DNA of 64,000 nucleotides, from the NCBI GenBank assembly GCA_965112735.1, contig OZ218963.1:2294001-2358000 (forward strand). Reading direction: 5' to 3'. The stretch comes from Phaeosaccion multiseriatum. Lineage: Eukaryota > Protista > Ochrophyta, other classes. The position numbers and the translations under genes are program-made. The notes beneath the pieces were generated by a model that saw only the letters and a program-made list of their open reading frames with translations, did no database searches and had not been told where the DNA came from. Shown one piece after another: positions 14,840 to 61,677 of the stretch (within the stretch, counting starts at the first letter, position 1; every line of letters starts with the position of its first letter).

Positions 14840-15669
14840 TGTTGCGATATCTCCTCTACGATGACAGGGACAAGCTAGAGTAGTGTCAACTCGTGTATTA
14901 ATAATACCTACTGAGAGATGCGTTCAAGGAAGTGATGGCCGTGGCCATACATGAATATCGATATCCACATCGATATTGTACGTCGATATAGTGCTCAGTC
15001 ACAACTGGCGATGCTCATCACAACACCCTCCTATGACTGAATCACTATCTCTCTTGATAGCTGACACTCTACTACAAACACAATGAGGAAACACCTGACT
15101 TGCCCTAAAACCCCCCGAGACAAAGTCCTGAAAACCTCATACTAAAACTACTGAACTAAAACTAGTCCCCCCCTTTCCTGTCTCCCTTCTTGAGCATCTG
15201 CCCCGCCAGACCGCTGTGTACCTGAGGTGCCAATGCCTTGGTCATGATGTCCCCAAGCTGGTCCTTTGTGCTGATGTACTGAAACCGAACGTGTCCCTTG
15301 TCCACGTGGTACTGCAGGAAATGATAACGAATGTCGATGTGACGTACGCGCTTGGTGCCCGCGTTGCCATTTGCCATCTGAATGCACCCTTGATTGTCCT
15401 CGTGCACAATCGACTCCGTCATGTTGGCTCCTGGAAACAGAAACTCCAGAATCCCTCTGTAAAACAGCAACTCCTTCACGTCATCTGCCCAGCTCGAGTC
15501 TGTACAGATCTTGCTCGCACCGAACCCTCGTGCCACGCTGACCCCTTCCGTACTTCTCTGTGGGTAGCGCATCCCAGTCCGTCTCATGTGCGCCTCTGTC
15601 ACCCTCACTGGTTGTCTCATACGTCCAATAACGACTGGCCTGCATAGTCTCCAGGTTCTGCTCTGCCTT

Positions 15670-16086
15670 TGTTACGATATAAGGCATCCCAATATGCCTT
15701 CAGTATTATCCAAACGGGGCGTTTGGATAATACTGAAGGCATATTGGGATGCCTTATATCGTAACAAAAGAGGGGTTCGAGTCCTACCTGAGGAAAGAGG
15801 AAAAAATAATATGATGTTACCCGAGGGGGGTTCCCAAGGAGATACCAGAGGGTCGTACCCTGTTGAAAAAAGCACGTGAAAACTGGTGGGATAAACAAAG
15901 GGACAGTATTTAGGGACGAACGTGTCGGTAGCGCCAACCCCCCGGTGCGAAGGTGTAGGGCTCAAGGAACCCACCTTTTGTTACGATATAAGGCATCCCA
16001 ATATGCCTTCAGTATTATCCAAACCAATTTTTATTAATTGGTTTGGATAATACTGAAGGCATATTGGGATGCCTTATATCGTAACA
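15670..16086. mobile_element. Element M: 417-bp non-coding element with hairpin termini
   Basis: Palindromes 15670-15766 (47-bp arms, loop GGG) and 15979-16086 (51-bp arms, loop TTTATT); TG..CA ends; TSD GCCTT. Confidence 0.9.
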
Positions 16087-16739
16087 GCCTTGCTGTGATC
16101 TGGCTGCTCTGCTCTTGCTGCTCCGTTCTGCCTTGCTCTGATATGGCTGCTCTGCTCTGCCTTGCTCTGCTCTGGCTGTTCTTCTCTTGCTGCTCTGCCC
16201 TGCCTCGCTCTGCTCTGGCTTGCTCTGCTATGCCGCACTTCCTGCTGCTGCTCGGCTGTTGGACGCCTCTGTGTCTCTGCTGTCTCTGCCTGCTGCCGCT
16301 TCCGCTGTGCGACTGGCTCTGCCTGTCTGTTGTCTTTGCCCCTTTCGGGAGTGGGCCCGTCCCTGCACGACGCTGCATATACTCTCCCGCCCGGCAGCGG
16401 AATGTCCGATGCTGCCTGTGCCTCGAGTCTCATAGACTTTCTCGTTGGTGCCACTGCCTCTCCGTGCAGGTCTGCTTTCCCTACTTCTGTCGGCTTTTCT
16501 TCCTGTGCTGCCTGCTGCTGTTTGCGCTGCTGTTCGCGATGCTGTTCGCGCTGCTCCACCAGTTGCTCCGTGTTTTCTCTGACTCCCTCTCTCTCTGTGG
16601 GACTCACGTCAGTCCCCACAAGCCCGCGGCTTGCTCCTACCCCTACCAAGTTCTCTACTCCTGGGTATATCTGGATGGCCTCCAACTCTGCCATCGACTC
16701 TGTTTTCCCCGGCTCTCGCTGCCGTGGCTCAGCCTGTTT

Positions 16740-16940
16740 CGGCTCTGGTTGCTGCTCTGCCTCTCCCGGCTCTGCACGCTCTGGTTGCTGCTCTACCGCT
16801 CCCGGCTCTGCACGCTCTGGTTGTTGCTCTACCGCTCCCGGCTTTGCACGCTCTGGTTGCTGCTCTGCCGCTCCCGGCTCTGCACGCTCTGGTTGTTGCT
16901 CTGCCGCTCCCGGCTTTGCACGCTCTGGTTGTTGCTGTTC
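16740..16940 (-). repeat. 36-bp tandem repeat encoding AEQQPERAEPGA-like units
   Basis: About 5-6 units; homologous array in element D at 28956-29110. Confidence 0.85.
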
Positions 16941-17956
16941 CTCGGGCCGGTCTACTGACGAACCTTCTCCGTGGCTCCCGCTGTCACCACTTCCCCCCTC
17001 CGCACTGCTTCTACTTCGTCCCCAGGGTTGGCTCTCATCCTCCCTGTCTTCTCCCTCTTGCGACTGGTTTGACACCGATACTTCCGGTGCCATTGCCACC
17101 CCCTCCGGCCTGCTGCTGCTGCGTCCCCAGGGTGGGTCTTCTTCCTTCCGCGTGATCTGACTTCCCGCATTTTGCTCATCGTCCCCCCCACCCCCTGTAT
17201 CACCAGGTGGGGCATTTCGTGCTGGCGCCGCTGCACTGACCTTCCTGACGCTGTATCTTGGGGATGGTGCTTGTGCACCGCCCCCCCCTACTCTGTAGTA
17301 GTCTGAGGGTTCACTGATAGACTCTGCACCAGTGTTCCACTCTCTCCGCGGGATCTGACTTCCCGCATTTTTTCTCATCCCCCCTTCCCCGGTGTCGCCG
17401 GGTGGGGTGCGGGGGACTGGTGCCGCTGCACCTGTCCCTCCTCTGCCCGAGCTGCTACTGCCACCTCTGCGGCTGCTGCTCGAGTTTACTCTGGCCTTTG
17501 TGGCCCCCAACACTGTTCCTCCTCCCGAGGTCTTGCTGGCCGACGCTGCCGCGGTCTTATTTCCCCCGCGCAGTGCCCTAAGTGCTTTCGTCTCGCTGTT
17601 CTCTGGCGTTGACGTTAGCTCCAACACCTGTTGTGCTGGCCTCCCCCCACTGGGAGCTTCTGTTCCTCCTCTCGAGGAAATGGTGACCGGCTCTGCGGCG
17701 GTATCTCTCCCCGCTTCCGTGGCCCCCGTCCCTACGATGTGATCCGTGACCGCTCGCATAAATCGCAAGAGAGGCATCACTCCCTCCGATTCTAACTTCT
17801 TGTCGAACTCGTTATTCTTCGGCTTGAACGTGAGTTCTAACAGCTGCTGTGCTGTACCCCCCCCCTGCTGGGGGTCGCTACTCCTCCTGCTGAGGAAATA
17901 GTGACTGGTGTTGCGGCCGCTGCCGTGGGCACTCCTTGCTGTGGGATTTTGGCAAA

Positions 17957-20900
17957 TGTGCTATTGTCCTATACAGTGTTGGTCATACATTCAGGGGTCA
18001 CAGAAATATGAGTGTAACCTTCATGGACACCCCTGACCCAGGGGGGATAGATAGAAAGCGTGTGGAGAGCACTCTTTTTCTTGCAAGCTCTAAGTGAGTA
18101 GTAAAGACTTAATACGGACACCGACGCCCCACCAGAGGCGCGGCGAATACTTGGTCCAAACCCCTTAAGCTTTTCTACGTCAGCTTAGCACAGAACTAGT
18201 TCTCGCATAAAGAGTTGCGAAAGAAGAATAACAGCAGTTGCAGGAGTTCTGAGGAGACGTCCAACGAGACTTCAGCAGCGACAGACATCAGTGCAGTCTT
18301 CTAGGGGAACCTAGGAGGATGGTTACGCCTTCAGAGCAGGATAAGTATGACACCAGCGATTGGAGAGGAGATTGGCCGATTCTTAAAGGGCAGAAGACTC
18401 CGATCAGAGTGAACACCTTTGTGTATGGCTATGAGAGGTGCGCAGAGAGAATGAGACTCGCTAGACAGCAAGCTCGCATTCCCGACATGGCTACTTTGTT
18501 GGACCCTGTTCTGAGAACGCAAGCCAGCGTTGAGTTAAAGGTACAGGTAACAGAGCTGAACACTGAGAACGTGAAGAAATGGCTCAAGGATTGGTTGAAG
18601 GAACATTCTGAGAGCGACGTGCAAGGAGAGACACTTGCATCTATTGCCGACGAGATCACGATAGAATGTGCGAATCGTGAGAACGCCGGAGCGCTGAAGG
18701 AGGCTTTAATATATGCCCACACGGAGTTTTTGGGTATGATCAAGAACAGCTCCTTCAGCACCCTCTTGCAGACAGAGGATGGCACTGCAGACAATTGGTG
18801 GCTGCCCAAAGATAAGGCGGCTACGAAGTCCATCAGGTTTGCTTTCAACAGTGTCTTGGTCCGATTTGATTCCAATATGGTGAAGCTCATTAAAGATGCC
18901 GAGAGACAGTGGCAGAGCTCGATTGATTGGGACAAGAACTACAAGCAATGGTTTGAACTCGTAGTGGATATCCACATGGGGTGGGCTAATGCTCGAGCTG
19001 CTGCCGCGCGAGCGAATCTCACGGCGGAACAGGCCTTGCCCAACTTGAAGAAGACGGGAGGAGGCGGCTCTGCTAATTCTGGAAAGGGGGGAGAGCCCGC
19101 CTGGAAGAAGAAGAAGCAGTAGCAGGCGGCGGCCAAGAATGGTGCAGCTGCAAGTGGTGGTTCGGTTGACGCGAAACCCAAGGAGGATGTTAAGCCTGCC
19201 GGAGGAGGGGGGACTAAGGAGCCACGCCCTTTCTCTGGAAAGTGTCTTTCATGTGGGTTAGCCCACACCCTCAGGAAGTGCCCAACGACCTCCCAAGATC
19301 AGAAAGATCGACTGTGGGCGGACTATAAGAAGAAACACCCGCACATTAAGGTCCTGGCATCAGCAGAGGCAGATGCAGGAGCCGTAGCAGAGGATGTGGA
19401 AGGGGAGAGAGTCACAGTTGATCTCGTCGCCAACCCATCTGAGACGGTGTCGGAAGCCGCACGGCTGAAGATTTCCGCAGTTTGGGACTCGGGCTGTGAT
19501 GTGGGGCTGGTTATCTCCCGCCGAGATGCAGACAAGTTTGTTGCGCTCGGGCGAGGTGGCAAGCTCACAGTCATTAAACCCCGGAGCCTCAAGACTGGAA
19601 ATGGCCTGGTCGAAGCCAAGCAGGTTTTGACAGGAGCGCATTTGTTGTTTGACTTTCCATGGGGGCCAGTGAGTACCCTTCAGATGGAAGAGAGTCTGCG
19701 CAATGCGTACGTGTTGGAGGAGATCGACATGATGTGTCTAGGTCGTCCTCTTCAGAAGGCTTTTGGACTATCATCCATTCGAGCCCAGTTCGAGACGATG
19801 CATAGCGAAGAAGCTTTGCGTCGCGAACGCGAGACTGCGGAGAAGGAGAAGGAGGCAGAGCCTCATAGCTCCAGCGCAGGTAGAGTGATGAGTCTCTTTT
19901 CGTCGGCTCCCTCAGAGGAGAGTGACGATTTGTTTCCTGTTGAGCAGGGGACGGGCAAGACGCCCATAGTAGGATCGGTAGGAACCTACCACCTTAACAA
20001 TGAAGAGATCAAACAGTATGACGGTGTAGCTGATACCATTCAGCAACCTGAGGACGGACTGCCGCCCACATACGAGAGCCTTGAGGCACGTTTGGGGTCA
20101 GTCGTCGACAATGCTATAGCAGAGCATGATTTTCCCGAGCGGTTGAAAGAACCGATGCTGAGGGCACTACTGAAGTGGCCTGACGTGTGGCGGGATGAGT
20201 TACTGTGGGAGGACGGTGCTGCTAAGGTTGAGCCGATGAAGGTGCAGTTCAAGAGCTCTGAACCACATTCGCAGCTCCCTATCAAGCAACCCGGTCCGAA
20301 GGCGGCCTTTGTGCGCGAGTTCACCAATAAAATGGTAGACAAGGGCTTTGGCTACAGCAACCCGCAGAGCGTGTATTCTAACCGAGCCTTCGCAGTGGGA
20401 AAGCCGGGAAAGCCCGGTAAGTACAGACTGGTGTGTGACCTTCGGGCAGCTAACGCAAACACAGTCAAGGTTGATTTCGGTATGACTGACACGGAGACTA
20501 TCTCTCTCGCACTGCGAGGGGCCAGATGGTTTATTGAGATTGATGGCAAGGATTTCTTTTGGCAATTTCCGCTCGAGGAGTGGTGCCAGGAGCATTTCAC
20601 TTACATAACCTCAGACGCAAAGGTGACTCCTACGAGAGTACCACAGGGAGCCCTCAACTCAGCGGCATATGTGCAGGGTACCATGAGCGAGGTCTTTCGC
20701 GAAGAAGTCGGTAAGACTCACGCCGTGTACATTGACAATATCGCCTACTGGGCTATCGAGGGTGAGGAGCTGGTCGAGAGGACCGAACTCACCATGGACA
20801 AGCTTCACGAGAAGAACTTGAAGATGGGAGTCAGCTCATTCAGTTTCGGAAGTGAGTTGAAGTTCGTGGGCAGAGTGCATGACAGACATGGTACTCGTCA

Positions 20901-23735
20901 CGATCCGGAGCGAATTCAAGGTCTGACAGACTTGGGTACGCCGGAGACAGCGGGCGATCTGATGACGTTCCTGTGTGGAATACAGTGGTTCAACCGCTGG
21001 GTGAAAGATTTCGCACAGTGGGTTGGGCCTCTGTATGAATTGTTGAATGAGTGTTTGGGGGAGGCTAATGCCAAACCGCATCAGCACAAGCGCTCTAAGG
21101 CTGTGGCTGCAACTATTCAACTAGACAAGAGGTGGACAGCTGAGCATGACGCGGCTTTCTTGGGGATCAAGCGCGTGCTCGCAGAGAACACGGTGCGCGC
21201 TCACCCGGACCCTGAGCAGGTAGTACTGGTGTTTGCAGACGCCAGTGACCGCTACTGGGGGGGCATGATCGCACAGTGTAGACCCGAGAACGTGGGTCTT
21301 CCTCTTGACGAGATGGACATGGAGCCGGTCGCTTTCTGTTCAGGTGGCTTTGGGAAGCATGAGCTCAAGCGAGCAACTGTGGACAAAGAGGCAGATGCCA
21401 CTTACCGGACTGTGATTCAGAATGAGTACGCTTTGGTAGGGGCGAGGAAGGTATACATTTTCTGCGACCATCGCAATTTGGCTTTTCTCTGGTCTAACGA
21501 CCCACAGTACCCGGGTCTGACCAAACCCATGCGAGAGCGGCTGCAGCGACAGGCACTTCGATTGCAGGCATTTGACTATACGATCATGCATTTGCCTGGC
21601 GACAAGCACTTGTGGGCTGACCCTCTGAGCCGTTGGCGCAAGAGGACGAGCCATGCAGCGCCTCGCGTGTTGGCTCTACGAGGCGGGAAATTCGGAGCCA
21701 TGCAGGTCTTTGACATGATGGCGCCTGACTTTCTTTGGCCCACGGAGCAGGAGATTGTCAGCGTTCAGCAGGAGGCCTTTGCAAAGCTCCTGGACGCTGG
21801 CAAAGAGGTGGGAGAGAGTGGTCGCCAACTGCTTCTCTCACAGACTGGCGACGGCGGTCTGATTCGAGCAAAAAGTAGCACAGATGACGACGCTCAGCAG
21901 TCAAAGATTTGGATACCGCGTAAGGCAGAGGATTTGCGCCTTCGGCTCAGCGTAGTGGCCCACCAGGGGGGCATGGGCCATCGTGGGATGACCAACACGC
22001 TGGAAGCTGTAGGGAAGGACTTTGTTTGGCATGGCCAGCAGGAGGATATCAAGCGCTTTGTGAACGAGTGTATTCATTGCCTTAGCAATGGCGTAGGGCT
22101 GCGCGTTCCTCGACCGCTTTTGGGTCAATGGCATGCTACCAAGCCCCAGCAGATGATATGGTTTGACTATGTCAAGATGGGCAAGGGTATCATTTGGGTT
22201 GATGGGCCTGATGGGTTCATGCAGATTCAAGTACAGTACGCGCTATGCATTTTTGATGACTTTTCGTCCTTGACAATGTACGAGCCGTGCTATGAGGCTA
22301 CCGCACGAGGGTGCGCGCGGGCTTTGCTGAGATGGTTTGCTCAGCATGGCATTGTGCCTCGATGGCAGAGTGACAGAGGCAGTCATTTCCTCAATGAGGT
22401 GATGAGCGAGCTGAGAGCAATGTTGAGGTGTGATCATCATTTTGTGGTGGCACATGCGGCTTATAGCCGTGGACTTGGGGAGCGCGGTGTGCAAACGCTT
22501 CAGAAGCTTATGCAGCCGCTACTATCAGAGATGAGGGCACTACCAGAGTCGTGGCCGCAGTTTCTACCAGTGGTCGAGTCCATCGAGAACAGTTGCACCA
22601 AGAGCAGTCGTTCCAGCAAGTCTCCGATTGAGCTGCATTCAGGCCATGTACCTCAGCGCCCTATCGACACGGTTATGCTTCATGATGCTGATCGAGCGCA
22701 GAAGGTGGAGTTGAAGCAACTCACCCAAGCGCAGGTCGACACGATGGCTGAGGGGCTACAGCAAATTCGGGAGCAGTTACGTACACGGGTCGAGGAGCAC
22801 CTCTCCAAGATCAGGGAGCGCAAGCGTGATGGCATCAACGCGCGTCTGTTGCAGGGGCGGCGTGGCGCCGAGCACAGGAAGGATCTTGATCGCGCGCGCG
22901 AGCTCGCCAGCGAGTCAATTTTCCAACCTGGAGTATTTATGACGGTGGCGTCAGTGGGGCCTACGAGCAAGGTCGTTGGCCGATGGCATGGTCCTTGCCG
23001 AGTGACTGAGGCTCTCGAGCACCACGTATATCGCATTGAGGAGTTAGTGGGACAGAAGCGCACTTTGGACGTGCACATCAACCGGCTACGTTACTACTGG
23101 ACGGTGATGTCAATCTTACTACCGACGTCCTCCACCAGATCTCACACAGCACTCAGAGTTTCGTAGTCGAGTCTTTTGAGGGGCTGGTTAGGCGTGCTGA
23201 TGGCAGCTGGTTCTTAATCGTCAAGTGGAGAGGCTTCGACGCAGTCGAGAACAGCGAGGAGCCCATCGAGCAGCTTATGGCGGATACACCCCAAGCCGTG
23301 GAGCAGTATCTCGCCAAGCATCCGGACAAACAGCGAATCAGCGCAGTCCGAGCCTACTTGCGGGCCCTCTCGGAGCGGAACGCAGAGCGGGTAGTAGCGC
23401 CCAAGCGCAAGCGTACGCGCAAGAAGCGGTAAGCGTTGCGTTAGGTACTGGGATAGTTTCTTTCCTCTTTTGACGGCTCGGGCTGTCGCTTGGGGGTAGT
23501 GTGCTATTGTCCTATACAGTGTTGGTCATACATTCAGGGGTCACAGAAATATGAGTGTAACCTTCATGGACACCCCTGACCCAGGGGGGATAGATAGAAA
23601 GCGTGTGGAGAGCACTCTTTTTCTTGCAAGCTCTAAGTGAGTAGTAAAGACTTAATACGGACACCGACGCCCCACCAGAGGCGCGGCGAATACTTGGTCC
23701 AAACCCCTTAAGCTTTTCTACGTCAGCTTAGCACA
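17957..23735 (+). mobile_element. Element F: near-complete chromodomain-bearing Ty3/gypsy retrotransposon inserted in C1 gag
   Basis: 236-bp LTRs 17957-18192 and 23500-23735 that read as identical, TSD CAAA, PPT GGGGGTAG. Confidence 0.95.
18319..23432 (+). pseudogene. Element F gag-pol (zinc knuckle, PR, RT, RH, IN, chromodomain) with one in-frame TAG and one frameshift
   Basis: TAG 19120-19122 in frame with pol; CLSCGLAHTLRKC; WDSGC; RT YIDN; RH FADAS/DHRNL; IN HHCC and SDRGSHF; chromodomain FLIVKWRGFDAVENSEEP in a shifted frame from about 23100. Confidence 0.88.
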
Positions 23736-24258
23736 CAAACTCTGCCGCTATCATCTCTTTCACCATTGCAGCCATCTGCTGCAGTGCGTCTCCTTCTATC
23801 GCGGAACTCGCACTGACGGGCGCCGCTGCGTCCGCCTTTTCAACGCCTTCTTCTTCCGCGCCTGGCATGGCTAACGAAAGGACTCCCTTCTCTCTCACTT
23901 GAGTTATCCGACCAAAACTCGCCTGTGTGCCGTCGCCGACTACTCGTAGAACCAGCTAGCTGTGAAGTGTCGCGACAGCTGTCGTGTTGCGATATCTCCT
24001 CTACGATGACAGGGACAAGCTAGAGTAGTGTCAACTCGTGTATTAATAATACCTACTGAGAGATGCGTTCAAGGAAGTGATGGCCGTGGCCATACATGAA
24101 TATCGATATCCACATCGATATTGTACGTCGATATAGTGCTCAGTCACAACTGGCGATGCTCATCACAACACCTGGGGCTAAGTTCCCCGGGGCGGTGAGA
24201 CATTACTTTTAGACAACCATAGATGGCACTTAAGGGTGTAATATATTTTAACACCTGG

Positions 24259-26276
24259 AGGGTGTCGATGATGTGGTGGTGGCTCAGTGGTTGGAGCAAC
24301 TCTTGTCCATGTGGAGCAGTCACTCGTTGCTGAAGCAGGCCGGTGTGGAGACGGAGCTGAACGCAGCACTGCAGTTGTTTCTCACCATTCGGCGGCTACT
24401 GTGGCAGTGTCGTGCCCTGCGGGCGGAGGTGGGAGGGTTGGCAGGTGGTGAATGTGTGCAGCAGCAGAGGCGGCGGGCGCAAGCAGCAGTGGCACGGGCC
24501 AAATTCTACCAGGCGCAGCTGCCCCAGCACATGCACGCAATGACTATCGGTGATGAAGGTTGGACAGAAGCGCAGCGGTGGGGCTTGGTGGTGGTGTTGA
24601 AGCAGCGAGTAGCGGCCTTCTGCGTGGATGGGAGCGATTACGGCCGCACAGATTCGGGCCGGTTTGGGTTTCCGTTGCTGGACCCGAAGCAGCCGCCAAT
24701 TCGGAGTGCGGCACGGCGCTACCCTCCTCCGGTCCGGCGCGGTATTGAGATTGAGTTGAACAAGATGTTAGCAGCAGAGATCATCCGGCCCAGCACAGCA
24801 GCCTGGGCCACTCCACTCATGGCCGTGTTGAAGACGGACGAGCACGGCAACACCAAGTGCCACGAGGACGGCACTCCGATCGTGCGGATGACGTGTGACC
24901 TGTCGCAGCTCAATGACGCGTGCCGCACGGAGGCGCCCGCCATGCCAGTGGTGGATGATTTGCTGGCGGAAATGCAGGGGTCTACGGTCTTTTCGGTGAT
25001 GGACATCATGTCTGGCTACTTCAATGTGCCCATGGCCACCACGGAGGATGAGGACATCTCTACATTTGTCTGCCACAGTGGCACGTACGCCTGGAGAGTC
25101 ATGCCACAAGGAGCGAAGAATGCACCCGCCACGTTCGTACGCCTTATGAACACGGTGTTGCAGGGCCTACAGGCATTCGTGGCGTGCTTCGTGGACGACA
25201 TTGCAGTTTTCTCCGCCACGGTGGATCCAGCACATTGGCCAGTTAGACCAAGTTCTCGGCAGGATGGTGCAGCACAAGCTCAAGCTGGCGCCGAGCAAGG
25301 TGGTGTTGGGGGCATCTCAGGTGCGCTTCTGTGGGCATTTGGTGGATAGTGAGGGGGTGCGGGCCGATCCAGCCAAGTATGCAGCAGTTCGAGCGCTGGC
25401 CAAGCCCACTGCGCAGTCAGGCAATCAGGTGCGACAGGTCAGGCGCTTTGTAGGCATGCTCAGCTACTTCCGCAAATTCATTCCGGCGTTTGCCATGAAG
25501 GTGCGGCCGCTCAATGAGCTCTTGCGCAAAGGGGTGGATGTGCGGTCAGCGTGGGGGCCGAGGCACGACGCGGCGTGGGAGGGGCTCATCGAGGACCTGC
25601 TCCGCTCGCCCGCGTTGGCCTTCCCTCACTATGGCTCGGAATCGGTGTTCACGCTCAGCACCGACGCTTCAGCAGACGGGTTAGGGGGTGTGCTGTCGCA
25701 GCGGGATGCCGAGGGGGTGGAGCGAGTCGTGACGTTCATCAGTCGTGCCACTACCCCCACGGAGGCTCGGCTAGGCAGTACGGAGCTCGAGCTCTTGGCG
25801 GTGGTTTGGTGTGTGCGCAAGTTGAGCATGTACATTTGCCACCATCCCTGCACGGTGGTGACGGACCACCAACCATTGCTGTGGCTGGCGACGCACAAGG
25901 ACACCAACTCCAAGCTCTTTCGGTGGTATGAACGGCTCTCTGCTCATCATCTCAAGTTTGTCCACAAACCGGGGCGGGAGCTTGTGGTGCCTGACTGCTT
26001 GTCACGCGACCCCTTGCCTGTGACTGAGTGGTGTGATGCGGTGGGAGTGGAGGTGGCGTTGGTGGATGTGGTGGGTGACACCCTCGCGTTAGGGTGGGAG
26101 GATCCGGTGGAAGGTGCGGTGCTGCGGTTTGCTGCCGCGGCGCAGCAGTTGCAAGGGGAGGCGGTGGCGGCTCAGTCAGTGCCTATGGAGGGACTCTCGT
26201 CGGTCACGGCGAGACAGCAGGCGTCGGCAGGTTTGGAGGCGCTGTGCGTGGACAGTGTGGCGGTCGAGGCGCCAGG
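24259..26276 (+). pseudogene. Element B reverse transcriptase and RNase H
   Basis: MDIMSGYFNV, MPQGAKNAP, FVDD, TDASADGLG, TDHQPL; +1 frameshift near 25228 relative to the paralog at 52840. Confidence 0.92.
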
Positions 26277-29200
26277 TGTTGCGATGTCTCTCTGCGCAAG
26301 TAGATACGTAAGCTCTTGTGCGTGTCAACTAATGTATTGTTCTTAACAGAACGCCATAAAAGTAGTACAGGGCCAAAGCCCCATGAGCCGAAGATCCCAG
26401 TGACGCATGTAACCAATATTGGGCATCCCACAGACCCCAATAAAGATCATATCACAACACCCTCCTTGGATCGAGACTCACTCTTTCCTAAACAGACACT
26501 CCTAAGATAGCAAGTAAAACGCATGTAAAACCTCGCTACCCTATTACCTAATCGCTAATCACTAACCCAAGCTATCCCAAGACTAACCCAAGCTAAAATA
26601 AAACCCAAACTACTTCAGCATCTTCGAAACCAAGTACTTGTGTACCTGTGGAGTCAAAGCCTTGGTCATGATGTCCCCAAGCTGCTCCTTCGTGTTCCCA
26701 TACTGAAACCTTACGTGCCCGTGCTGCACGTGATACTGCAGAAAATGATACCGAATGTCAGTGTGACGCGTGCGCTTGGAGCTCGCATTGCCATTGGCCA
26801 GCTGGATGCACCCCTGATTGTCCTTTGTACATCATCGTCTCCTCCAAAACCGTCTTCGGAAAGAGAAACTCCAAAAGACCTCGATGAAAGAGCACCTCCT
26901 TCGTGCACTCCGCTGCTGCCATATACTCACTCTCCATGGAGCACATTGCAATGACCTTGAACATCACTGCCTTGTGTGCAATTGGCCCGCCGCCAAGCAT
27001 GAGTACGAACCCCCCAGAGCTACGACGCTTGTCCACGTCCCCAGCCCAATTTGCGTCAGCGTAAGCCTCCAAAGCAAGACCCGCCTTTCGATCAAATTCA
27101 ATCCCCAAATCAAATGTACCCCTAATATACCCTGTCAAATGCATCAATGCCTTCCAGTGCTCCGGTCCCGGTCGCTGCATAAAACGAGCAAGCTCTCGCA
27201 CAGCATAAGACGTGTCTGGTCGCACAAAGTTGGCTGCCCACATCAAAGAACACACAAGACACGAGTACAACTTGTCAGACATAAACTCAATGTCTTCCAA
27301 ACCGTTGGCCTCCATTGTCTTAGACAAATGCACTCCCGGCTCCACTGGAGAGCCGTAAATTGGCCCCTCCAACTCGCCAGGTCGCTCCAAAGAACGACGC
27401 AGATACCCTCCAACCGAAAGCCGAAGAATACCCTGCTCCCGCTGATAATTCACCTCCAAACCCAGAAAGTGATCAGCCCGAGGACTGCGCTTCAAAGCAA
27501 ATTGCCCGTCTATCGCCGCGTAGGTACGGTCGATCAAATCTCCCGCTCCAGCCCCACACAGGTCATCCGCGTAAACAACTAACATGCCACACAAAATCTC
27601 CTCCTCCGTGTAGTAAGCAAACAAACACGGATCAATGTCACTCTGCACCCAGCCCATGCGTAACAGAAACTCTACCAGAGTCTGATTCCAACGCCTCGGT
27701 GACTGATGCAAACCATACAAGCTCCTCAAGAGCCTCAGCACAAGCCCACGCCCAAGCAAGTTATTTGGCGCAGAAACATACACTTCCTCCCCCTCCTCCA
27801 GAGGAGCGAACAGAAATGCAGTCTCTACATCAGCAATTTGCAAATCCCAATCATTGTGGCAAGCAATCGCAAAGAAAAGTTTCAATGTCGACCCACCCAC
27901 AACCGGAGCAAACGTATCCCAAAAGTCTTTGCCCCGCACCTGATGATGACCCCCCACCACCAGCCTCATCTTGAATTTATCCACAGTCCCATCAGGTTTT
28001 ACCTTGAGCTTGGATATCCAATGAGTAGGCAAGACGTGCATTCAGTCGGTCCGCGGGACTACCTCCCAGACCTTGCCCCTCCAAGCTGTTCCACTCACTG
28101 TGGAGAGCCTCGTTCCACTCCTCGGCGAACTCGCCGTTGAGCGCCTCGTTGATGCTCTTGTGCTCAAACCCGCCCGGCTTCTTCATAAGCCGAGTCAATT
28201 TCTCCTCGCAAATGCTATGTCGCTCACAATCATGCTAGCGGCCATCACCGACGAACCCACCCGGCTATCACACAGTCAGCCTGTTCGTCTTCAATGCCAC
28301 TTGCCTCTAAGCTCTTCCACAAATGCTCACAAGTCTTCGCTGGTGACCCATACACATGTCCACCCAAGACTTCATGCCACTCGAACGTAGCACCCATATC
28401 ATACCCCCTCTACAGGAACACTCAAAATCCAGTCCCCCTCTTCTGTGCACAACTTGCTCACCCTTGGTCCTGCTTCCGCGTTGACCTCTCCCATACAAAT
28501 CTTGCTCGCACGTAACCCTCATGCCACGCTGACCGCTCCCATACTTCCCTGTAGGTAGCGCACGCCAGTCCGTCTCCTGGGCGCCTCTGTCGCCCTCCCT
28601 GGCTGTCTCATACATCCAAAAACGACTGGCCTGCATAGGATCCAGGTTCTGCTCTGCCTTGCTCTGCTCTGCCTTGCTCTGCTCTGTCTCCTCTGCTCTG
28701 CTTTGCTCCGCTCTGGCTGCTCTTCCTGGTGCTGTTCTTGTTGTACTGTACGCTGCCTTCTCTTGTGTCTCTGCTGGCTCTGCCTGCTGCCGCTCGCGCT
28801 GTGCGGCTGGCTCTGCCTGTCTGCTGTCTTTGCCCCTCTCGGGAGTGGGTCCGTCCCTGCACGACGCTGCATATACTCTCCCGCCCGGCAGCGGGGTGTC
28901 CAATGCTGCCTGCTGTGTCACGGTAGACTTTCTCGTCGGTGCCACTGCCTCTTCCGGCTCTGCACGCTCTGGTTGCTGCTTTGCCTCTTCCGGCTCTGCA
29001 CACTCTGGTTGCTGCTCTGCCTCTTCCGGCTCTGCACACTCTGGTTGCTGCTCTGCCTCTTCCGGCTCTGCACGCTCTGGTTGCTGCTCTGCCTCTTCCG
29101 GCTCTGCACGCAACCCTCTCTCTTCATTAGTAAGGGGCCCTCCCTCACCATTAGGACTGATCTTACGTGTATCGACCGACACTTCCGTTTCACCATCCGT

Positions 29201-30161
29201 CCCTTCTTCTTCCGGCTCCGGCATACCATTTTCTCGTATGCCCAGCCCAAGACTACTAACGTAGCCTTCGATGTGGGACGCACCCTCATCACCGGGACAG
29301 GTCTCACGTGTGTCAGAAGACACATCCGTTCCACCATCCGCCCCCACTGTTTGGACATAAGAATTGTCCTGTGCCGCATCTTCTGCCGTGGGCACTCTCT
29401 CGTCATCCGACAGAATGTCTAAGGCGCCTTGCATGCCAATAAAGGCGCGCAGATCGGCCTTGTACTGCCAGAACTCTACTAACGTAGAGCCCTCTTTCAG
29501 CTCAGAAGAAAAGGTTTGCACTTTTGACTTGTAGCTCAAACAAATCAGAGAACCGCTGCTACCGCTGCTGCCCCCATCCACGCTGTTTCCCCTTTCCTCT
29601 ACCGTGCCGCCAATACCTGACGCACTTTCTTGGCTTTCGGCTGCTAACGCAACAGAACCGCCTGCTTCGGAACTTGTGCCCAACTGGGCTTCCATCATCT
29701 GCATAAGCCTTGCAATCTGCTGCTCCTGCTTCTGCACTGTGCGAAGCAATACCTGAGAATCTAACGATTCGCTGCTTGCTCCTTGACTAGAGGTTACATC
29801 AACCTCTTCGTCATCGTCCCCTTTCTGCTCTGTCGTGCTAGCATGTCCCCCAGACATGGGTACCGCAAGACAGGACTACGCCTTCTTCTGTTGAATTACA
29901 CTCACTTCGTTTTCTGCTGTCGCCGAACAAATAAATTGCAGAACCAGCTAGCTGTGAAGATGTTCGCGACAATTGTCGTGTTGCGATGTCTCTCTGCGCA
30001 AGTAGATACGTAAGCTCTTGTGCGTGTCAACTAATGTATTGTTCTTAACAGAACGCCATAAAAGTAGTACAGGGCCAAAGCCCCATGAGCCGAAGATCCC
30101 AGTGACGCATGTAACCAATATTGGGCATCCCACAGACCCCAATAAAGATCATATCACAACA
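26277..30161 (-). mobile_element. Element D: Ty1/copia deletion derivative retaining RT-RNase H but lacking PR and IN
   Basis: 183-bp LTRs 26277-26459 and 29979-30161, TSD CCAGG, PPT at 26460-26467; RT LYGLHQSPR, YADD; RH YADANWA; gag N-terminus in ORF 28307-29857. Confidence 0.92.
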
Positions 30162-30166
30162 CCAGG

Positions 30167-32221: not shown

Positions 32222-33684
32222 TGTGGAGTCGTGCACTGAAAGGATGACTACCAATAGCAATAGACCCTACCTGCACATAGCAGGAGGTCAGTCGCTATCC
32301 ACCAGAGGTGGAACACTCGTGAGAAAACGAAAGGACGAGAGATGAAGTAATATTTTAGGAGATGGAAAGAACTAAAAGGAAACTGAAACTGAACGAAGAA
32401 ACTGAAACTATGAACTGACGACATTTGTGAGCATACCTCCACAGTCCCCCCTTTGAAAGCATGTGTGCATACGCAGACATGATAAGGAAAGAGAAAGAGA
32501 TGAACACAAATAGGAGGAAAGGAAGTAAGGAAAAGAGGGAAATCCACACAGACTGGCTACACCGACTTGGGAACAGAACAGATGGAGGGAAAAGCTGCCT
32601 CACACAAGGGGGAGGGAAAAAGCGGCCACACAAACAGTCCAGAAACACCAGAGAGTAGAGAGAATTAGCCCTAGCTACACCGACTTGGGAACAGAACAGA
32701 TGGAGGGAAAAGCTGCCTCACACAAGGGGGAGGGAAAAAGCGGCCTCACAAACAGTCTAGAAACACCAGAGGGTAGGGAGAATTATTTCAGGGCACATTG
32801 GTACTCAGAAGGTATAGGAAAGAGTCCGAGGGAAACAGAAGAAGATTAGAAGTGAGGAGAGTAACGGTCACGGAGAAAGGTGACAGTACGTTCCGACGCC
32901 TGACGGGGAGGGCCGGTGGCGCCGTCTTTGATGTGCTGCGTCGCTGCTGCCTTACCAAGGGCCTCTTGGATATTAATGCCGAGCTCCTTCAGGGTGGCGC
33001 GGCCCACGGTAACCAACTTGGTCATGTCGTTATCCGTGATGGCATAGCTGATCTTGGGCACCAAGAGAGGGCCCTGGAAGGTGTGAAGAATGAGGTCCAA
33101 AGGTGGAGTACGCCGCTTGTAGGAAAACATGTTGGGGCTTGAGGCCGGCAGCGAGGCCTCCGCTGATTGCAGAAGCTGTGCCTTCTACCCATTCGTCCGC
33201 ACTCTCGTTGTAGACCACGGCGAGCTGCCCACATTTATCCAGCGCCGAAAAGAGCTGCACAATCTGCTGCTGGCATCGATCCACTGCGGCCGCTCTCTGA
33301 CTGGGATCGGCCAAAAAAGGCTGGATGTAGACCTCGATGCTGGAAGAGCCTACCGCGGGTGGTGTACAGCCTACCACCGGGTGTTGTAGTGGCGAGACGG
33401 ACATTGGTCGCCGCTGAAATTGGAAAGTGTATGAAATGTACTATCCGGTAATAACTAGTTATTGTGGAGTCGTGCACTGAAAGGATGACTACCAATAGCA
33501 ATAGACCCTACCTGCACATAGCAGGAGGTCAGTCGCTATCCACCAGAGGTGGAACACTCGTGAGAAAACGAAAGGACGAGAGATGAAGTAATATTTTAGG
33601 AGATGGAAAGAACTAAAAGGAAACTGAAACTGAACGAAGAAACTGAATCTATGAACTGACGACATTTGTGAGCATACCTCCACA
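32222..33684 (-). mobile_element. Element G1: 1463-bp non-autonomous LTR element (gypsy deletion derivative)
   Basis: 222-bp LTRs 32222-32443 and 33463-33684, TSD GTGC, PPT at 32444-32455, protease-tail-like remnant TVGRATLKELGINI. Confidence 0.92.
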
Positions 33685-33969
33685 GTGCTGACGTGGCAGG
33701 ACCTTTCCCCATGGCCATGGGGGGGGAGGAGTACATTTTGGTGTTTCAAGATTGGTTCACCAAATGGACAGTGGTGGTACCATTGTGCGCCAAGGACTAT
33801 ACAGCGGAGGGCATTGCTCGGGCATTCGTGCGGCACGTAGTGACGGTGCTGGGGGCGCCCAAGGTGCTGGTCAGTGACCAAGGGTCGCAGTTCACGAGCA
33901 CGCTCATGGCCGATGTGCTGCGCGTACTCCAGACATCACAAGTCTTCACTACGCCGATGCATCAGCAAG

Positions 33970-34694
33970 TGTTAGAAGTCGTACTTTTGCTAGACTGATA
34001 CCTCCCGGTCTGAATTCAGAGGGCAGGTATCAGTCTAGCAAAAGTACGACTTCTAACAAGGCTAGTTGTGAGTTCGAACCTTAGCTGTCGCTTGTGAAAA
34101 AGCGTATTTTTCGGCGAAAACTGTTACCAGCTTGCTGGCCCATGATGCTGATTCTCAGACTGCGAGTTACTTCTCTCCACTATGTGCGGTGGGGGGGGGG
34201 GGGTTCGTCTTCTAGCAACGGTCTTGTTAGAAGTCGTACTTTTGCTAGACTGATACCTCCCGGTCTGAATTCAGAGGGCAGGTATCAGTCTAGCAAAAGT
34301 ACGACTTCTAACATCTCCACTATGTGCGGTGGGGGGGGGGGTTCGTCTTCTAGCAACGGTCTTGCTAGAAGTCGTACTTTTGCTAGACTAATACCTCCCG
34401 GTCTGAATTCAGAGGGCAGGTATCAATACGACTTCTAACAAGGCTAGTTGTGAGTTCGAACCTTAGCTGTCGCTTGTGAAAAAGCGTATTTTTCGGCGAA
34501 AACTGTTACCAGCTTGCTGGCCCATGATGCTGATTCTCAGACTGCGAGTTACTTCTCTCCACTATGTGCGGTGGGGGGGGGGGGTTCGTCTTCTAGCAAC
34601 GGTCTTGTTAGAAGTCGTACTTTTGCTAGACTGATACCTACCCTCTGAATTCAGACCGGGAGGTACCAGTCTAGCAAAAGTACGACTTCTAACA
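33970..34694. mobile_element. Element K1: concatemer of the hairpin-terminal family K (four hairpins)
   Basis: Hairpins 33970-34058, 34225-34313, 34362-34440 (partly deleted), 34606-34694; single TSD CAAG. Confidence 0.9.
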
Positions 34695-42247: not shown

Positions 42248-42594
42248 TGTTAGAAGTCGTGCTTTTGCTAGACTGGTACCTACCCTCTGAATTCAGACCG
42301 GGAGGGTACCAGTCTAGCAAAAGCACGACTTCTAACAAGCCCATTGCTAGAAGTCGAACCCCCCCCCCCCACCGCACATAGTGGAGAGAAGTAACTCGCA
42401 GTCTGGGAATCAGACTAATGGGTGCAAGCCGGTACCAGTTTTCGCCGAAAAACACACTTTTTTCACAAGCTACAGCCAGGGTTCGAACTCGCAATGGGCT
42501 TGTTAGAAGTCGTGCTTTTGCTAGACTGTACCTACCCTCTGAATATTTTTATTCAGAGGGTAGGTACAGTCTAGCAAAAGCACGACTTCTAACA
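42248..42594. mobile_element. Element K2: unit-length hairpin-terminal element (347 bp)
   Basis: Hairpins 42248-42337 and 42501-42594, TSD GCTG; internal region inverted relative to K1. Confidence 0.92.
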
Positions 42595-43594
42595 GCTGCC
42601 TGCCCTCGAGGAGGACGGCTCGTTCGAGACGCCTTCGGCATGGGTGCACGAGCTGAGGGCGCGGATGGCAGCGGCGGCGCAGGTGGTGACGGGCAGGCGC
42701 GAGGAGTATCGCAGCAGGCTACAGCTCAAGAACCGTGAGCGTCGCTGGCCAGCGCCGATGCCTCCTGGCACTAAGGTGTGGTTGTACCGTCCAGGGGGGG
42801 CGGCGCAGGAGGAGGGTGAGGCCATGGAGGAGCAGAAGGCACTGACGCTCAAGGCGCTGAGTCATGCTTGGGACGGACCGTTCCAAGTCCTGGCTTGGCC
42901 CACACAGCAGGCCTTCCAGGCGCGACATGGTGGCATACTCAACGACGAGCACTACGCGGTGATGCGCCGTAGCACGGTGTATCTGGATGTGCCGAGGGTC
43001 AGAGGCGGGGGAGTGGAGTTCAAGCAAGGGGCGTACCATAGGGACCTCACCAAGCCGTTCGTTGATGGGGTGAGTGGCCAGCCGGAAGGACTACCAGATG
43101 GGTTCGCTCGATACCACATCCGGTACTGCTCAGCCCACTGGGGTACTAGTGCACTGCAGGAGAAGCGTAGCGTGACCGATGACGAGGTTGGGATAGGGCG
43201 GGCGCCCGAGCTGGTGCGGATAGTGAAGATGAGGTGGCGTAAGGCCACAGGGCAGCCCCTACGGCGTGAGTACTGTGTCCGTTGGGCTGTACGGGAGGGT
43301 GGCAGTTATCAGACGTGGGAGTGGGACGATTGGCTCTTGCGGCGCGGGGAGAGGGCGGCAATAGAGGCATTCGAGGACTCTTTGGCGCCAGGGGCGTTGG
43401 ACCCGAGCGTGCAGCGCAAGCGTGGGCAGCGGTCTAAACGAGAGCGCACCGTGCGCGCCATGTTGCACGAGAAGTGGGGGATGGGCATCGCTGCGGAGAC
43501 GGCGCAACATTTGGGGTTCTAGACCTTGCGGTGGTGGTGGTCGCAGAGACGGGATAGGCATTGGGGATGTTGGAAGGTTACGGGATAGGCATTG

Positions 43595-46500
43595 TGTTGT
43601 GATAAGTATCGCCATTTGTGACTGAGCACTATATCGACGTACAATATCGATGTGGATATCGATGTTCATGTATGGCCACGGCCATCACTTCCTTGAACGC
43701 ATCTCTCAGTAGGTATTATTAATACACGAGTTGACACTACTCTAGCTTGTCCCTGTCATCGTAGAGGAGATATCGCAACACGACAGCTGTCGCGACACTT
43801 CACAGCTAGCTGGTTCTACGTAGTCGGCGACGGCACACAGGCGAGTTTTGGTCGGATAACTCAAGTGAGAGAGAAGGAGTCCTTTCGTTAGCCATGCCAG
43901 GCGCGGAAGAAGAAGGCGTTGAAAAGGCGGACGCAGCGGCGCCCGTCAGTGCGAGTTCCGCGATAGAAGGAGACGCACAGCAGCAGATGGCTGAAATGAT
44001 GGAAAAGATGATAGCGGCAGCGTTGGCCAAACACATCACACAGCAAGGAGTGCCCACGGCAGCGGCCGCAGCACCAGTCACTATCTCCTCAGTCGGAGGA
44101 ACAGTGACCCCCAGCGGGGGGGGGAGTACAGCACAGCAGCTGCTAGAACTCACGTTCAAGCCGAAGAACAATGAGTTTGACAAGAAGTTGGAATCGGAGG
44201 GAGTGATGCCTCTCTTGCGATTTATGCGAGCGGTCACGGATCACATAGGGGGGATGGGGGCAAAGGCATTCTTGGTGGATAGTGATAAGATCCCCAACGC
44301 AGACGACGCCTCCCGGGACTCTAAGTATGCCCTGACGTTCAGTCTGTACCAACAGACGGGCCTCAAGATTTTGGAGGCCATTCCCTCGGACATGAGGGAT
44401 GCCATAGAAGAACGCACTCGCACAGCGCGGTTCCAAGTGGACCTGGTACTATTGATGCAGGCAATCAAGGAGGCAGTGATGGGGAGCACGCAGTCACAGC
44501 GACAAGAGTTTCTCACCTCCGAGATGCACGATCTGAGGCCAGGGGTGGGGGAGACGGGACTTGCCTACCTCAACAAGTTTCTCCAACTCAACGTGTTGAT
44601 GACGGAGGAGCAGCTTCCTATGTCCTACTCCATCATCAAGGACAAGTTCCTCAGGCGTATGGGGCAGAGATGGGAGTCGTTCGGCCAAGTGCACGGTCAT
44701 TCGGTAGAGACAGAGGACGAGTTTAATCGGTTCAAACAGCAAGTGCAGCGGTTTGACAGTGACCTCCAAGCGCAAGCGAGGGAGGCGGGAGAGGACCTTG
44801 AGCGGGGCCTTTTCCACATTTACCAGCAAAGGCAGAAGACACAGCAACCAGCAGGGGGGTAGACAGACCACCACAGGGGCAGGAGAGAAAGATCGGTCCA
44901 ACACACGCTGTTACAGGTGTGGGAGAAAGGGGCACATGCGGACGACGTGTCCGTCCAAGGAGGAGCTGTGTTTCAACTGCCACAAGCCGGGGCACCAGCG
45001 TGCAGACTGCCCAAACAGCAGGAAGAAGAAAGATGGCGAGCATGTGGAAGGCTCCACCAGCGCCATTTTCAGCATTCCGTGGACGCTACAGGAGAGGGGG
45101 AGCGGCCATTCTCTCTACCATATGTCCAAGCTGAAGTCGGGGGCGGATGGCACACGGCAGGGGCTCGCAGACAGCGGATCGGCGCTCAATGTGTGGCCCA
45201 ACTTGGATGGACTGTACGATTTCTGCGCTCATCAGAGTTTAGTGCAACTCGCAGACGGCAAGTCGCACGCGCAGATAATGGGCAAAGGGAAGGTGAACAT
45301 CAGCTACGTCTCCAACGACGGCAAAAGAGGACTGAAGGGGCTGGAGGTAGTGGTGTCGCCAGACGTACCTTTCTGCATTTTTGCAGAGAAGAACCTCTCA
45401 GACCTACTGGGGGGAGCGCAAGGCCAGCGGGGAAGCCAGTCTATTTCGGCCCCTCAGCAGACGCACCAGAGACGGTGCACACGACGCAGGACCCAGAGCT
45501 GGGGCTTGACATGCTACAATTCAAGATCGAGGAGGCCACGGAGCAGTGGAGTGATTACATGACTTACCACTGCAAGAAGGGCCACCGCAACGATCAAGAA
45601 CTACGGCGACAGGCCAAGCTGGAGGGCGTGACACTGTGCGGGAAGAGGGCGCCGTGCAAGACTTGCGCAGAGGTGAAGATGACGAAGGCAGCTCAGAGTA
45701 AGCAGTTCATCGACTACCCCAAGGCACCGCTGGCACAGGTAACGCTCGACACCATTCCTCTCGAAGGAGAGCACGTGTTGCAGGCGTGCTGCCCGCACAC
45801 GGGTATGGGCTGGTGCAGGAAGGTGGGGGGAAAGACGGAGGCGCACTTCCAGAGCGTGTATGACGACCTCAACACCACAGTATTCATTCCAGGGGAGAGG
45901 ACAGCGGGGTACAAGGTGCAGTGTCTGTCAGCAGACAACGGATCGGAGCTCATCAAGACGAAGGCAGCGAAGAAGATGCTCTACTCCCAGGGCATTGAGG
46001 TCAAGCTGACGGACCCCAATTGTCAAGCGCAGAACGGACTGAACGAGGCTCGACACAAGGAGCTGGCGCGAATGTCTATTCTTTTCATTGAGGAGGCGAA
46101 GCTGGAGGAGCACTCGAAGCAGCTGAGGTTCGTAGCGTACAAGTTGGCGCAGCTTCTCTACAACACCAGGTGCAGGAGGGGGCAGCAGCAGTCCCCCTAC
46201 GAGCTGTATTTCAAGCGCAAGCCTGACCTACAGCACCTACACATCTTCGGAGAGCAGGCGAAGGTGCGGGTGGGCAACAAGAAGCACAAGCAGTGGCACA
46301 ACGACAAGACGCACTCGGCAGTGTACGTGGGACAGAGCCCCAACCACAGATCAGCCTGTCTCCTTTTCTACATCCCTTCACAGAAGCGGTTCATCTCCAG
46401 CTCGTCCTACACATTCGTGACGAACCGCAGACACGACGGCACGGTGTTCGGGAGTCACGTGGAGAAGGGGAAGCTACCAGAGACAGCGGAGAAGGAGGAT

Positions 46501-47813
46501 GACAGCGAGGACGAGGACCAGCCCTCGAGCAGCGGGAGCAGCAGCAGGAGCAGCAGCAGGAGCAGCAGCAGGAGCAGCAGCAGTAGCGCGAGCGGGGAGG
46601 TGGGGGCGGGACCAAGAGTGGAACCGTCACATGGAACACGAGATTAGAGGAGGCACAGCCAGCCCCACAGCAGCAACAGACATCACGCTGGGAACAGGTT
46701 CTCACCCGAGAGTTCGTGGAGAAGTTACAACTCGAAGGAGAAGGCCTGGAGCGACGTCAGCACGCCGAGCGGCAACAGAGGGAGCAGACGGCAAAGCAGC
46801 AACAGAGAGAGCAGCAGAAACAGCAAGTAGAGCAGCAAGAGCAGCAGCAGCAGCAGGCAGAGCAGCAACAGGCAGAGCAGCAGCAGGAAGAGCCAACGCA
46901 GCAGGCTGAGCCGCCAGAGAGAGGCAAACTCTGGACATACGAGGTGGCCAAAGATGGCGACAAGGGAGCCAAGGAGCACGACTGGGGCCACGATCCCAGC
47001 CTGGGCCGCACGCGTAGCGGCAAGCACTGACATGCTGTCTCCTCCATACTAGGCCCACTCTTTCTGATGCCAGGCCTAAAGGAGAGCGAGGTACCGATAC
47101 CGCGGTCTCTGGCCCAGGCTCAAGCAGGAGAGTACGCGGAGCAATGGACGGAGGCGTACTGGGCAGAGCTCAACGCGATCGAGCAACGCCAGGTATGGGA
47201 GGAGGTTGATTATCAAGAGGGGATGAATGTGCTGCATACAGTCATGCTATTCAGAGCAAAGGTGACTGGGGGACTTGTGGATAGGCTCAAGTGTCGATTT
47301 GTCGTGATGGGGAACGAGCAGATCGAGGGGGAGGATTACTTTGATACCTTTGCACCAGTGGTGGGGAGCTCGACGATGAAGATGTTCTTTGCTATCACGT
47401 GCCAGAAGAAGTGGGTATTGGAGTTTGCAGATGTGGAGACGGCTTTCCTGCATGCACCTCTGCATGAGGGGGAGTACGTGTACATTAGAGCACCAGAGGG
47501 CATGAGAAAGTTCGGGAAGGTGCTGAGGCTGTTGAAGAGTCTGTACGGTCTTCATCAGTCTCCCAAGAGGTGGAACGAGACAGTGGTGGCATTTCTACTC
47601 GCAATGGGGTGGGTACAGTGCCCAGTGGATCCGTGTCTGTTCGCCAGGTTCGAGGAGGGGGAGCTAATAGGGCTCATCATTCTATATGTAGACGACCTAG
47701 GAGGGTCAGGGGAGGGAAATCTCATTGACTGCACTTTCAAGGAGATTGACGAGCGTTTCAAGTTGAAGCGTTTGGGGTCGAATGTGGGGAAATTTCTGGG
47801 AGTTGAAGTGGGA
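43595..47813 (+). mobile_element. Element C2: Ty1/copia, 3'-truncated, with frameshifted gag-PR-IN and partial RT
   Basis: 5' LTR 43595-43780 (family of C1); gag 43894, two CCHC knuckles, ADSGS, SADNGSE, QNGLNE, RT to YVDD..FLGVEV, then directly the B 3' LTR. Confidence 0.9.
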
Positions 47814-58402: not shown

Positions 58403-58577
58403 TGTTGCGATATCCCCTCTACAGAAACAGTGACAGGCCAAGTAGTGTCAACTCTTGTATTGTTATATACCCATGAGAGATACGTCTAAAGAAGTGATGG
58501 CTTTGGCGCCACACATGTACCTCGATATTCTATGTCGATATAGTGCTCAGTTACATAAGTCGATGTTCATCGTAACA
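58403..58577 (-). repeat. Diverged solo LTR of family C
   Basis: Aligns to 14840-15025 with many substitutions; no matching TSD. Confidence 0.8.
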
Positions 58578-58601
58578 CATCTATTTGTGTTGACATTGCT
58601 C

Positions 58602-61570: not shown

Positions 61571-61661
61571 TGTTAGGAGTCGTGCTTTTGCTAGACTGAT
61601 ACCTACCCTCTGAATATTCAGACCGGGAGGTGTCAGTATAGGAAAAGAACGACTTCTAAGA
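61571..61661. repeat. Degenerate solo K hairpin
   Basis: Left arm near consensus, centre TCTGAATATTCAGA, right arm mutated. Confidence 0.75.
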
Positions 61662-61677
61662 AGGTTGATTGTGAGAA

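Follow-up and report, generated by a model that had tools for sequence, protein, structure and literature searches.

The window analysed here is a 64,000-nucleotide stretch of DNA from the alga Phaeosaccion multiseriatum, and at positions 15670-16086 it carries a non-coding element of 417 bases, which we call M. By reading of the sequence and with a repeat finder, M resolves into a hairpin, a 212-bp core and a second hairpin, with outer tips TGTTACG and CGTAACA that give the unit its TGT..ACA (TG..CA) ends (Table 1). The four 46-nt arms of the two hairpins are 100% identical, and for the arm word 0 chance occurrences are expected within the window. Folded as single-stranded DNA, the first hairpin forms a 47-bp stem closed by a GGG loop (-55 kcal/mol, z = -21.5) and the second a 51-bp stem with a 6-nt TTTATT loop (-58.5 kcal/mol, z = -21.8); the axis insert of the second is palindromic in its own right. 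The initial annotation had described M as a hairpin-core-hairpin with 47- and 51-bp arms, TG..CA ends and a GCCTT target site duplication (TSD), and both sequence and folding matched that description.

The symmetry of M does not stop at its hairpins. A 58-nt inverted repeat found by the repeat finder (I1, 97%) reaches 12 nt into the core, and complementarity between the first 12-22 nt of the core and its last 12-27 nt is present in all three M subfamilies and, in looser form, in K, a second family with the same architecture. Direct reading of both strands bore out the earlier claim that M lacks a primer-binding site (PBS) and a polypurine tract (PPT). No tRNA-complementary TGG site follows either repeat, the adjoining sequence being AAAGAGGGGTTC... 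on one strand and AAAGGTGGGTTC... on the other, and no purine tract abuts the 3′ repeat, where CCACCTTT on one strand and CCCTCTTT on the other are both pyrimidine-rich. ARAGORN found no tRNA in the window, and Rfam models run over 15400-16400 gave sub-threshold matches to generic miRNA hairpin models only, with no family.

Two short words recur in the cores. A GTTCGA-type (B-box-like) word lies 8-15 nt from the hairpin in both M (15774-15784) and K (34074-34082). A Pol III reading of the M word, GGTTCGAGTCC, found little support: the pattern occurs twice in the window against 0.8 expected, which is no enrichment, and an A box was not seen. The word GAAAACTG sits mid-core in M (15878-15885) and K (34116-34123) and occurs 8 times in the window against 1.8 expected, mostly from K copies. 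One truncated M copy, L022, has its apparent start at a TG just 3′ of this word and a 5-bp duplication, ACTCC.

Table 1. Features of element M and of the LTR element that carries it (window positions).
Feature	Position	Strand	Remarks
Host copia-type LTR element carrying M	14840-24171	-	LTRs 14840-15026 and 23985-24171, 100% identical; duplication CCTGG
Left TSD copy, GCCTT	15665-15669		single copy at empty paralogous site
Left terminal repeat of M, 97-bp palindrome	15670-15766		arm A 15670-15715 (+), axis insert, arm a 15721-15766 (-); outer tip TGTTACG; 47-bp stem; tip matches copia LTR tips
M core, non-coding, 212 bp	15767-15978	+	~27 genomic copies, all arm-attached; three subfamilies
M core 5′ end, imperfect inverted repeat of core 3′ end	15767-15788	+	kept across all subfamilies; B-box-like GGTTCGAGTCC word at 15774-15784
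M core 3′ end, complementary to core 5′ end	15952-15978	+	12-bp helix and 9-bp helix with 2-nt bulge
Right terminal repeat of M, 108-bp palindrome	15979-16086		arm A 15979-16024 (+), 16-nt axis insert, arm a 16041-16086 (-); outer tip CGTAACA; 51-bp stem
Right TSD copy, GCCTT	16087-16091		flank reading and empty-site joint

M lies inside a copia-type LTR element and must therefore have entered after that copia copy was made. The host copia has a 12-bp palindrome at the PBS position and a gypsy element nested at 17957-23738, and an internal stretch of it is homologous to an RVT_2-bearing copia at 26276-30163. The flank of M is a low-complexity simple repeat of the GCTCTGCCTT type, so the GCCTT duplication taken alone could be chance, and it is the empty site that settles the matter. 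In contigs from three public runs (X1, X4 and X5; two studies), 15664 is joined to 16087, and 422 bases (417 + 5) are absent, with 5 ambiguous at the joint. The same genome holds a paralogue without M, in which two segments, C14:1486462-1486700 and C14:1486696-1486995, are 100% identical to the left and right flanks and have exactly 5 bases in common, and a second empty paralogue at C14:2687030-2687492 has the same pattern. Contigs of an RNA run (X6) cover the copia flank only, in its empty form, and do not cover M. The window copy of M is a real, recent insertion, made as a discrete TGT-to-ACA unit with a 5-bp duplication.

We then took M across the 67-Mb, 22-contig genome, in which the window is G000:C14:2294001-2358000. 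A 27-base word from the M arm has 122 genomic occurrences and its reversed control 0, and the core is present at ~27 places, every one attached to arms. M is a dispersed, parasitic, non-coding mobile family of roughly 45-65 loci, spread over 13 contigs in unrelated sequence surroundings; metagenome contigs did not contain the arm word. Independent short-read assemblies contain pieces of the arm and core, with contigs that break at the palindromes. Assembly fold-back, which the initial annotation had named as a possible source of the palindromes, is an unlikely one, given that the arrangement is found at dozens of loci whose flanks and duplications differ.

The loci take several forms: the hairpin-core-hairpin unit, solo 92-bp hairpins, direct arrays, inverted-core arrays and one-armed ends. 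The direct array at L003 has five hairpins and four cores at a period of ~310 bp, inverted-core arrays are found at L006, L010, L019 and L024, and the solo hairpins at L031, L033 and L035 have duplications of their own. Single arms were recorded at C8:418981 and C9:1816295, and the latter is a centrally deleted hairpin. Tabulation of TSDs gave an exact 5-mer duplication at 17 of 28 tip-to-tip clusters and 0 in five shifted controls; 7 of the remaining clusters border on core fragments, which disqualifies them as true ends and brings the count to 17 of ~21. These 17 duplications differ in sequence, and most are rich in G and C. By core sequence, M divides into three subfamilies (M1, M2 and M3), ~100%, 82% and 71% identical to the window copy and 97.4-100% identical within each, so that cores differ by up to 29% with arms that are almost invariant across all three. 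On sequence grounds, each subfamily is young.

At least five M loci lie inside 14 kb (G000:C14:1541000-1555000, at 1541210, 1547035, 1552239-1552773 and 1554139), with many more on C14, and the distribution of M may be non-random. Single arms in direct orientation also occur within a (TGAG)n microsatellite at L039 (G000:C1:1232606-1232976) and L040 (G000:C16:164352-164444). These microsatellite-embedded arms comprise three copies, 169 and 157 bp apart, that have three substitutions in common, and the fragment was apparently amplified as part of the tandem repeat.

As the initial annotation had reported, family K has the architecture of M, with a palindromic repeat of ~90 bp, a short core and a second palindromic repeat, together with unrelated arms and a 4-bp duplication, CAAG. 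K has many copies in the window, at 33970-34694, 42248-42594, 51838, 61571-62189 and 63155-63471. The axis of one K-type hairpin is occupied exactly by the 1.39-kb M array of L003 (G000:C12:3039995-3041384), which is bordered on either side by half of that hairpin's centre and has no clean 5-bp duplication. The window also holds a second kind of small non-autonomous LTR element, in two 100%-identical 1.46-kb copies (32222-33686 and 55218-56682) with 224-bp LTRs that start TGTGGAGTCG and 4-bp duplications GTGC and AAGT.

Outside M itself, the window contains six matches to the 12-base M tip at up to two mismatches, and five of the six fall exactly at copia LTR tips. Those at 14840, 23985, 43780 and 58403 agree with the M tip at 10 of 12 positions, and that at 58577 at the first 9 of 9. 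The copia lineage in question has RVT_2, LTR pairs that are 100% identical and 5-bp duplications, and what is new in these data is this match between the M tip and the LTR tips of resident copia elements that make duplications of the same length. Past the tip (~12 bases), similarity between the M arm and the copia LTR ends is no better than shuffles, as would be expected if only the integrase recognition tip were mimicked. The partner copia has no tRNA site and carries instead a 12-bp palindrome directly after its 5′ LTR; no motif like this palindrome stands beside an M repeat.

The tip of K is likewise the end of a resident LTR, here of gypsy type (53541-53783 and 57432-57674), with agreement of 10/10 for one tip and 14/17 for the other, and this LTR comes after an RVT_1/RNase H pol. 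The intact gypsy element in the window (17957-23738) has a 4-bp duplication, and the duplications of the intact elements bear out the earlier observation that copia elements here make 5-bp and gypsy elements 4-bp TSDs. Two independent tip matches, each with a matching duplication length, make borrowed resident integrases the most economical reading. Copia integrase, then, probably inserts M, and the earlier suggestion of a copia-type integrase for M and a gypsy-type integrase for K gains support from both the tips and the duplication lengths. A 15-base version of the M tip has 123 hits in the genome; the 100 of these that were listed are all at M loci, and no autonomous element sharing the tip, which might have served as a partner with M termini, was found among them, although a partner whose tips have diverged, or that is missing from this assembly, may exist. 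A longer element with M arms was not seen either, in that the 10-kb loci around solo hairpins and single arms held no distant arm pair.

Two further copia-type sequences in the window deserve mention. A plus-strand copia of the host type runs from 43594 onward: its 5′ LTR (43594-43780) shares 97.9% identity with the host LTR, the palindrome CGACAGCTGTCG comes next, its ORFs include a retroviral-integrase SH3-like domain (44917-46647), and its 3′ LTR was not found within the window. A solo copia-type LTR at 58403-58578 is 75% identical to the host-element LTR and adjoins a methyltransferase gene (58602-59504, minus strand); at one tip the solo LTR has TGTTACGAT, the same sequence as the M tip, and no clean duplication was seen around it.

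The orientation of a palindrome is not self-evident, and small asymmetries reveal it. In M2 and M3 hairpins, position 43 of the arm (4 nt short of the axis) shows an A>G change, always in a single arm and never in its partner as well (~25 arms, many loci). Four of five informative elements have this marker in corresponding arms of their two repeats (L013, the first unit of L019, L021 and L029), L048 being mirrored. The internal bubble of K hairpins faces the same way relative to the core in 6 of 7 cases, and at 42501-42594 the bubble is gone and an A/T centre has appeared. The concordance of the marker together with the orientation of the K bubble shows that the terminal repeats behave as direct, faithfully inherited, LTR-like repeats, and inheritance of a one-armed change at position 43 shows that an arm is not routinely copied from its partner. 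Private substitutions common to both arms do occur (third hairpin of L003, L034, L036 and L038), and L038 has the one-armed position-43 change alongside three substitutions common to both arms, a pattern that fits occasional within-stem correction by quasi-palindrome template switching, not regeneration of whole arms. A rolling-hairpin (parvovirus-like) replicon was considered and rejected, with the K bubble fixed in 6/7, the M marker concordant and M without coding capacity (no nickase gene).

The centres of the hairpins behave differently from the arms. About 25 of 41 M hairpins have a bare axis without spacer, perfect in M1 and with the single position-43 mismatch in M2 and M3. Variable centres belong to M1, where they interrupt a 92-bp palindrome precisely at its axis and leave it perfect elsewhere; in M2 and M3 the centre is uniform and repeat pairs are alike. 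The M1 inserts are unique to a single hairpin with one exception (GCGC, found twice); most have the form G-filler-C and are G/C- or A/T-rich, and several are palindromes themselves. Within M1, no axis insert recurs between the two hairpins of an element, or among the five of an array, although the arms are identical. Extra arms have been captured at the axis in L032, L003 and L007 and an arm-plus-core fragment in L048, and deletions begin at the axis in L002, L006, L018, L029, L049 and L050. Breakage at the centre followed by end joining is an established behaviour of palindromic DNA, and we infer that the filler is better explained by secondary repair of perfect palindromes in this way than as a signature of replication. 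The completely different loops to which the initial annotation drew attention are real as differing centres, but they read better as filler at a palindrome axis than as a trace of how M is copied.

The reading that we favour, with modest confidence, places M among the TRIM-like, non-autonomous miniature elements of LTR type, as a small family that depends on an integrase and has neither a tRNA-type PBS nor a PPT. The unit is a terminal repeat, the 212-bp core and a second terminal repeat, each repeat a two-arm (46-nt) palindrome; its tips copy both LTR tips of a resident, recently active copia lineage, whose integrase would carry out its insertion. Copia integrase acts on DNA made inside the particle, so the reverse transcriptase of copia would most likely copy M by way of an RNA. 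Priming would presumably not be by tRNA, which would match the partner with its 12-bp palindrome in the position of the tRNA site; a candidate primer is formed by the 12-22 nt after the 5′ repeat paired with the stretch before the 3′ repeat, with a 3′ end that would land exactly at the LTR tip. This pairing of core ends could be either an RNA self-primer or, in a DNA transposon, a mere subterminal inverted repeat. After insertion, perfect palindromes would break at the axis and be repaired with filler, which would yield differing loops, captured fragments and one-armed variants, and recombination between repeats would yield solo hairpins, arrays and inverted cores.

Several features fit this TRIM-like reading poorly. 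The usual PBS and PPT are absent, and similarity to the copia LTRs does not extend past ~12 bases, so that the link consists of the tips and the duplication length. M1 repeat pairs never have a common axis insert, where a standard LTR cycle would make the two repeats identical, and fast change after insertion is needed to account for this. Both the core ends and the element as a whole are inverted-symmetric, like a TIR transposon.

One alternative is that M is a MITE of a Ginger2/TDD-like cut-and-paste transposon, with an integrase-related transposase encoded elsewhere that recognises the TGTTA tips and makes the 5-bp duplications, and with palindromes that are long, self-folding inverted repeats. 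Ginger2/TDD elements have TGTNR tips, 4-5-bp duplications, 50-180-bp inverted repeats and an integrase-type enzyme (PMC2836005), and the M tips fit TGTNR, with TDD-4 and TDD-5 offering 5-bp duplications and inverted repeats in the range of 50-180 bp (PMC2836005). Inverted symmetry runs 12-25 nt into the M core at both ends, arms are kept and cores drift as in MITEs, and any A tip with any downstream a tip seems usable, since solo, one-armed and array forms all have duplications. Yet the 100 of 123 hits to the 15-base tip that were listed disclosed no partner and every core is arm-attached, and the GC-rich duplications of M show no preference for RTATAY or for CCGG, where the reported targets are RTATAY for Ginger2 and CCGG/CCGT for Ginger1 (PMC2836005). 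Moreover, M and K each fit a different resident LTR lineage in tips and duplication length, so that two matching transposases would be needed, and the asymmetry markers give direct rather than mirrored repeats in 4/5 M elements and most K hairpins. The Ginger origin that the initial annotation had offered as its alternative keeps the tips, inverted repeats and TSD length on its side and fails on partner, target preference and repeat orientation; weakened in this way, it now appears unlikely.

Less probable still is the model that the initial annotation itself preferred, in which the hairpins are remade in each cycle by fold-back self-priming, with filler added at the turn and perhaps with a closed-hairpin linear DNA as intermediate. 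Such a model would make PBS and PPT unnecessary and would give M1 its axis inserts, unique per hairpin, G/C- or A/T-rich and in several cases palindromic; it would also suit the private substitutions found in both arms, the K hairpin that has no bubble and the existence of inverted-core arrays. Against it, the position-43 asymmetry is one-armed at ~25 arms and in L038 stands beside three both-arm substitutions, the K bubble is faithfully inherited with no randomisation of flip and flop, and ~25/41 hairpins have a bare axis, a loop-free turn that snap-back cannot make. A direct four-core array also exists (L003), and quasi-palindrome correction together with centre-break repair account for the common mutations and the filler, with no need of a special mode of replication. 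That M is not mobile at all, and is instead a dispersed satellite, a recombination product or an assembly fold-back artefact, is scarcely credible: tandem arrays with a ~310 bp period (L003) and short-read contigs that break at palindromes are what it has to offer, against a precise empty site, 17 loci with different exact 5-bp duplications and a spread over 13 contigs with unrelated flanks.

We also put forward, tentatively, a broader proposal that we rate well below even chances. Hairpin-repeat elements may form a distinct class of LTR-retrotransposon parasite that needs no tRNA primer site or polypurine tract, both primers coming from the palindromic repeats together with the complementary ends of the core; alternatively, such elements may go through a linear DNA with closed hairpins. 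Such elements would exploit the priming mode of the alga's palindrome-for-PBS copia and gypsy elements, and their architecture would have come to stand on two integrase types independently, whether evolved or transferred. The hairpin design of the terminal repeats appears not to be tied to one integrase, M having copia tips and a 5-bp duplication and K gypsy tips and a 4-bp duplication, and its presence on two integrase types suggests that the reason for the palindromes is to be sought in a shared copying step and not in integration. The palindromes of M may in this way be linked to the palindromic primer sites of the alga's own LTR elements. With a family that is small, young and active, the copying mechanism is testable. 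The perfect 46-bp M stems probably also give rise to hairpin RNA and small RNAs, and the palindromes could serve as natural reporters of palindrome breakage and repair in the genome.

Among known systems, M is closest to TRIMs, which occur as solo repeats and TDR(x)-I(x-1) tandem arrays and some of which, such as biv-TRIM, have no clear PBS (PMC6934838). Like Cassandra and biv-TRIM, M is non-coding and ~400 bp in total, with ~100-bp terminal repeats, TG..CA ends and a 5-bp duplication; its 97- and 108-bp repeats around 212 bp agree with the TRIM definition of terminal direct repeats of ~100-250 bp around a short non-coding domain. M shares with TRIMs the solo repeats and repeat(x)-core(x-1) arrays and, presumably, dependence on an autonomous LTR partner. 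Unlike TRIMs, it has near-perfect palindromic repeats of two 46-nt arms, no tRNA-type PBS and no PPT, core ends that are mutual inverted repeats, and young copies whose repeats differ at the axis. M resembles Ginger2/TDD elements in its TGTTA tips, its inverted repeats (in the form of a palindrome) and its 5-bp duplication, and departs from them in that no partner was found among the 100 of 123 tip hits listed, there is no AT-rich target preference, the terminal repeats act as direct repeats and the tips match resident copia LTRs. Fungal copia elements of the GalEa type have a palindromic ‘conserved hairpin site’ in place of the PBS (PMC5445492), and the partner copia is like GalEa in having a 12-bp palindrome directly after its 5′ LTR; in M, unlike GalEa, no short palindrome stands beside the repeat, and the whole repeat is the palindrome. 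K and M are alike as palindromic-repeat units that mimic a resident LTR tip and occur in arrays and as solo hairpins, and differ in that K has a gypsy tip with a 4-bp duplication and M a copia tip with a 5-bp duplication. Our best reading is that M is TRIM-like at integration and represents a new variant among miniature LTR elements.
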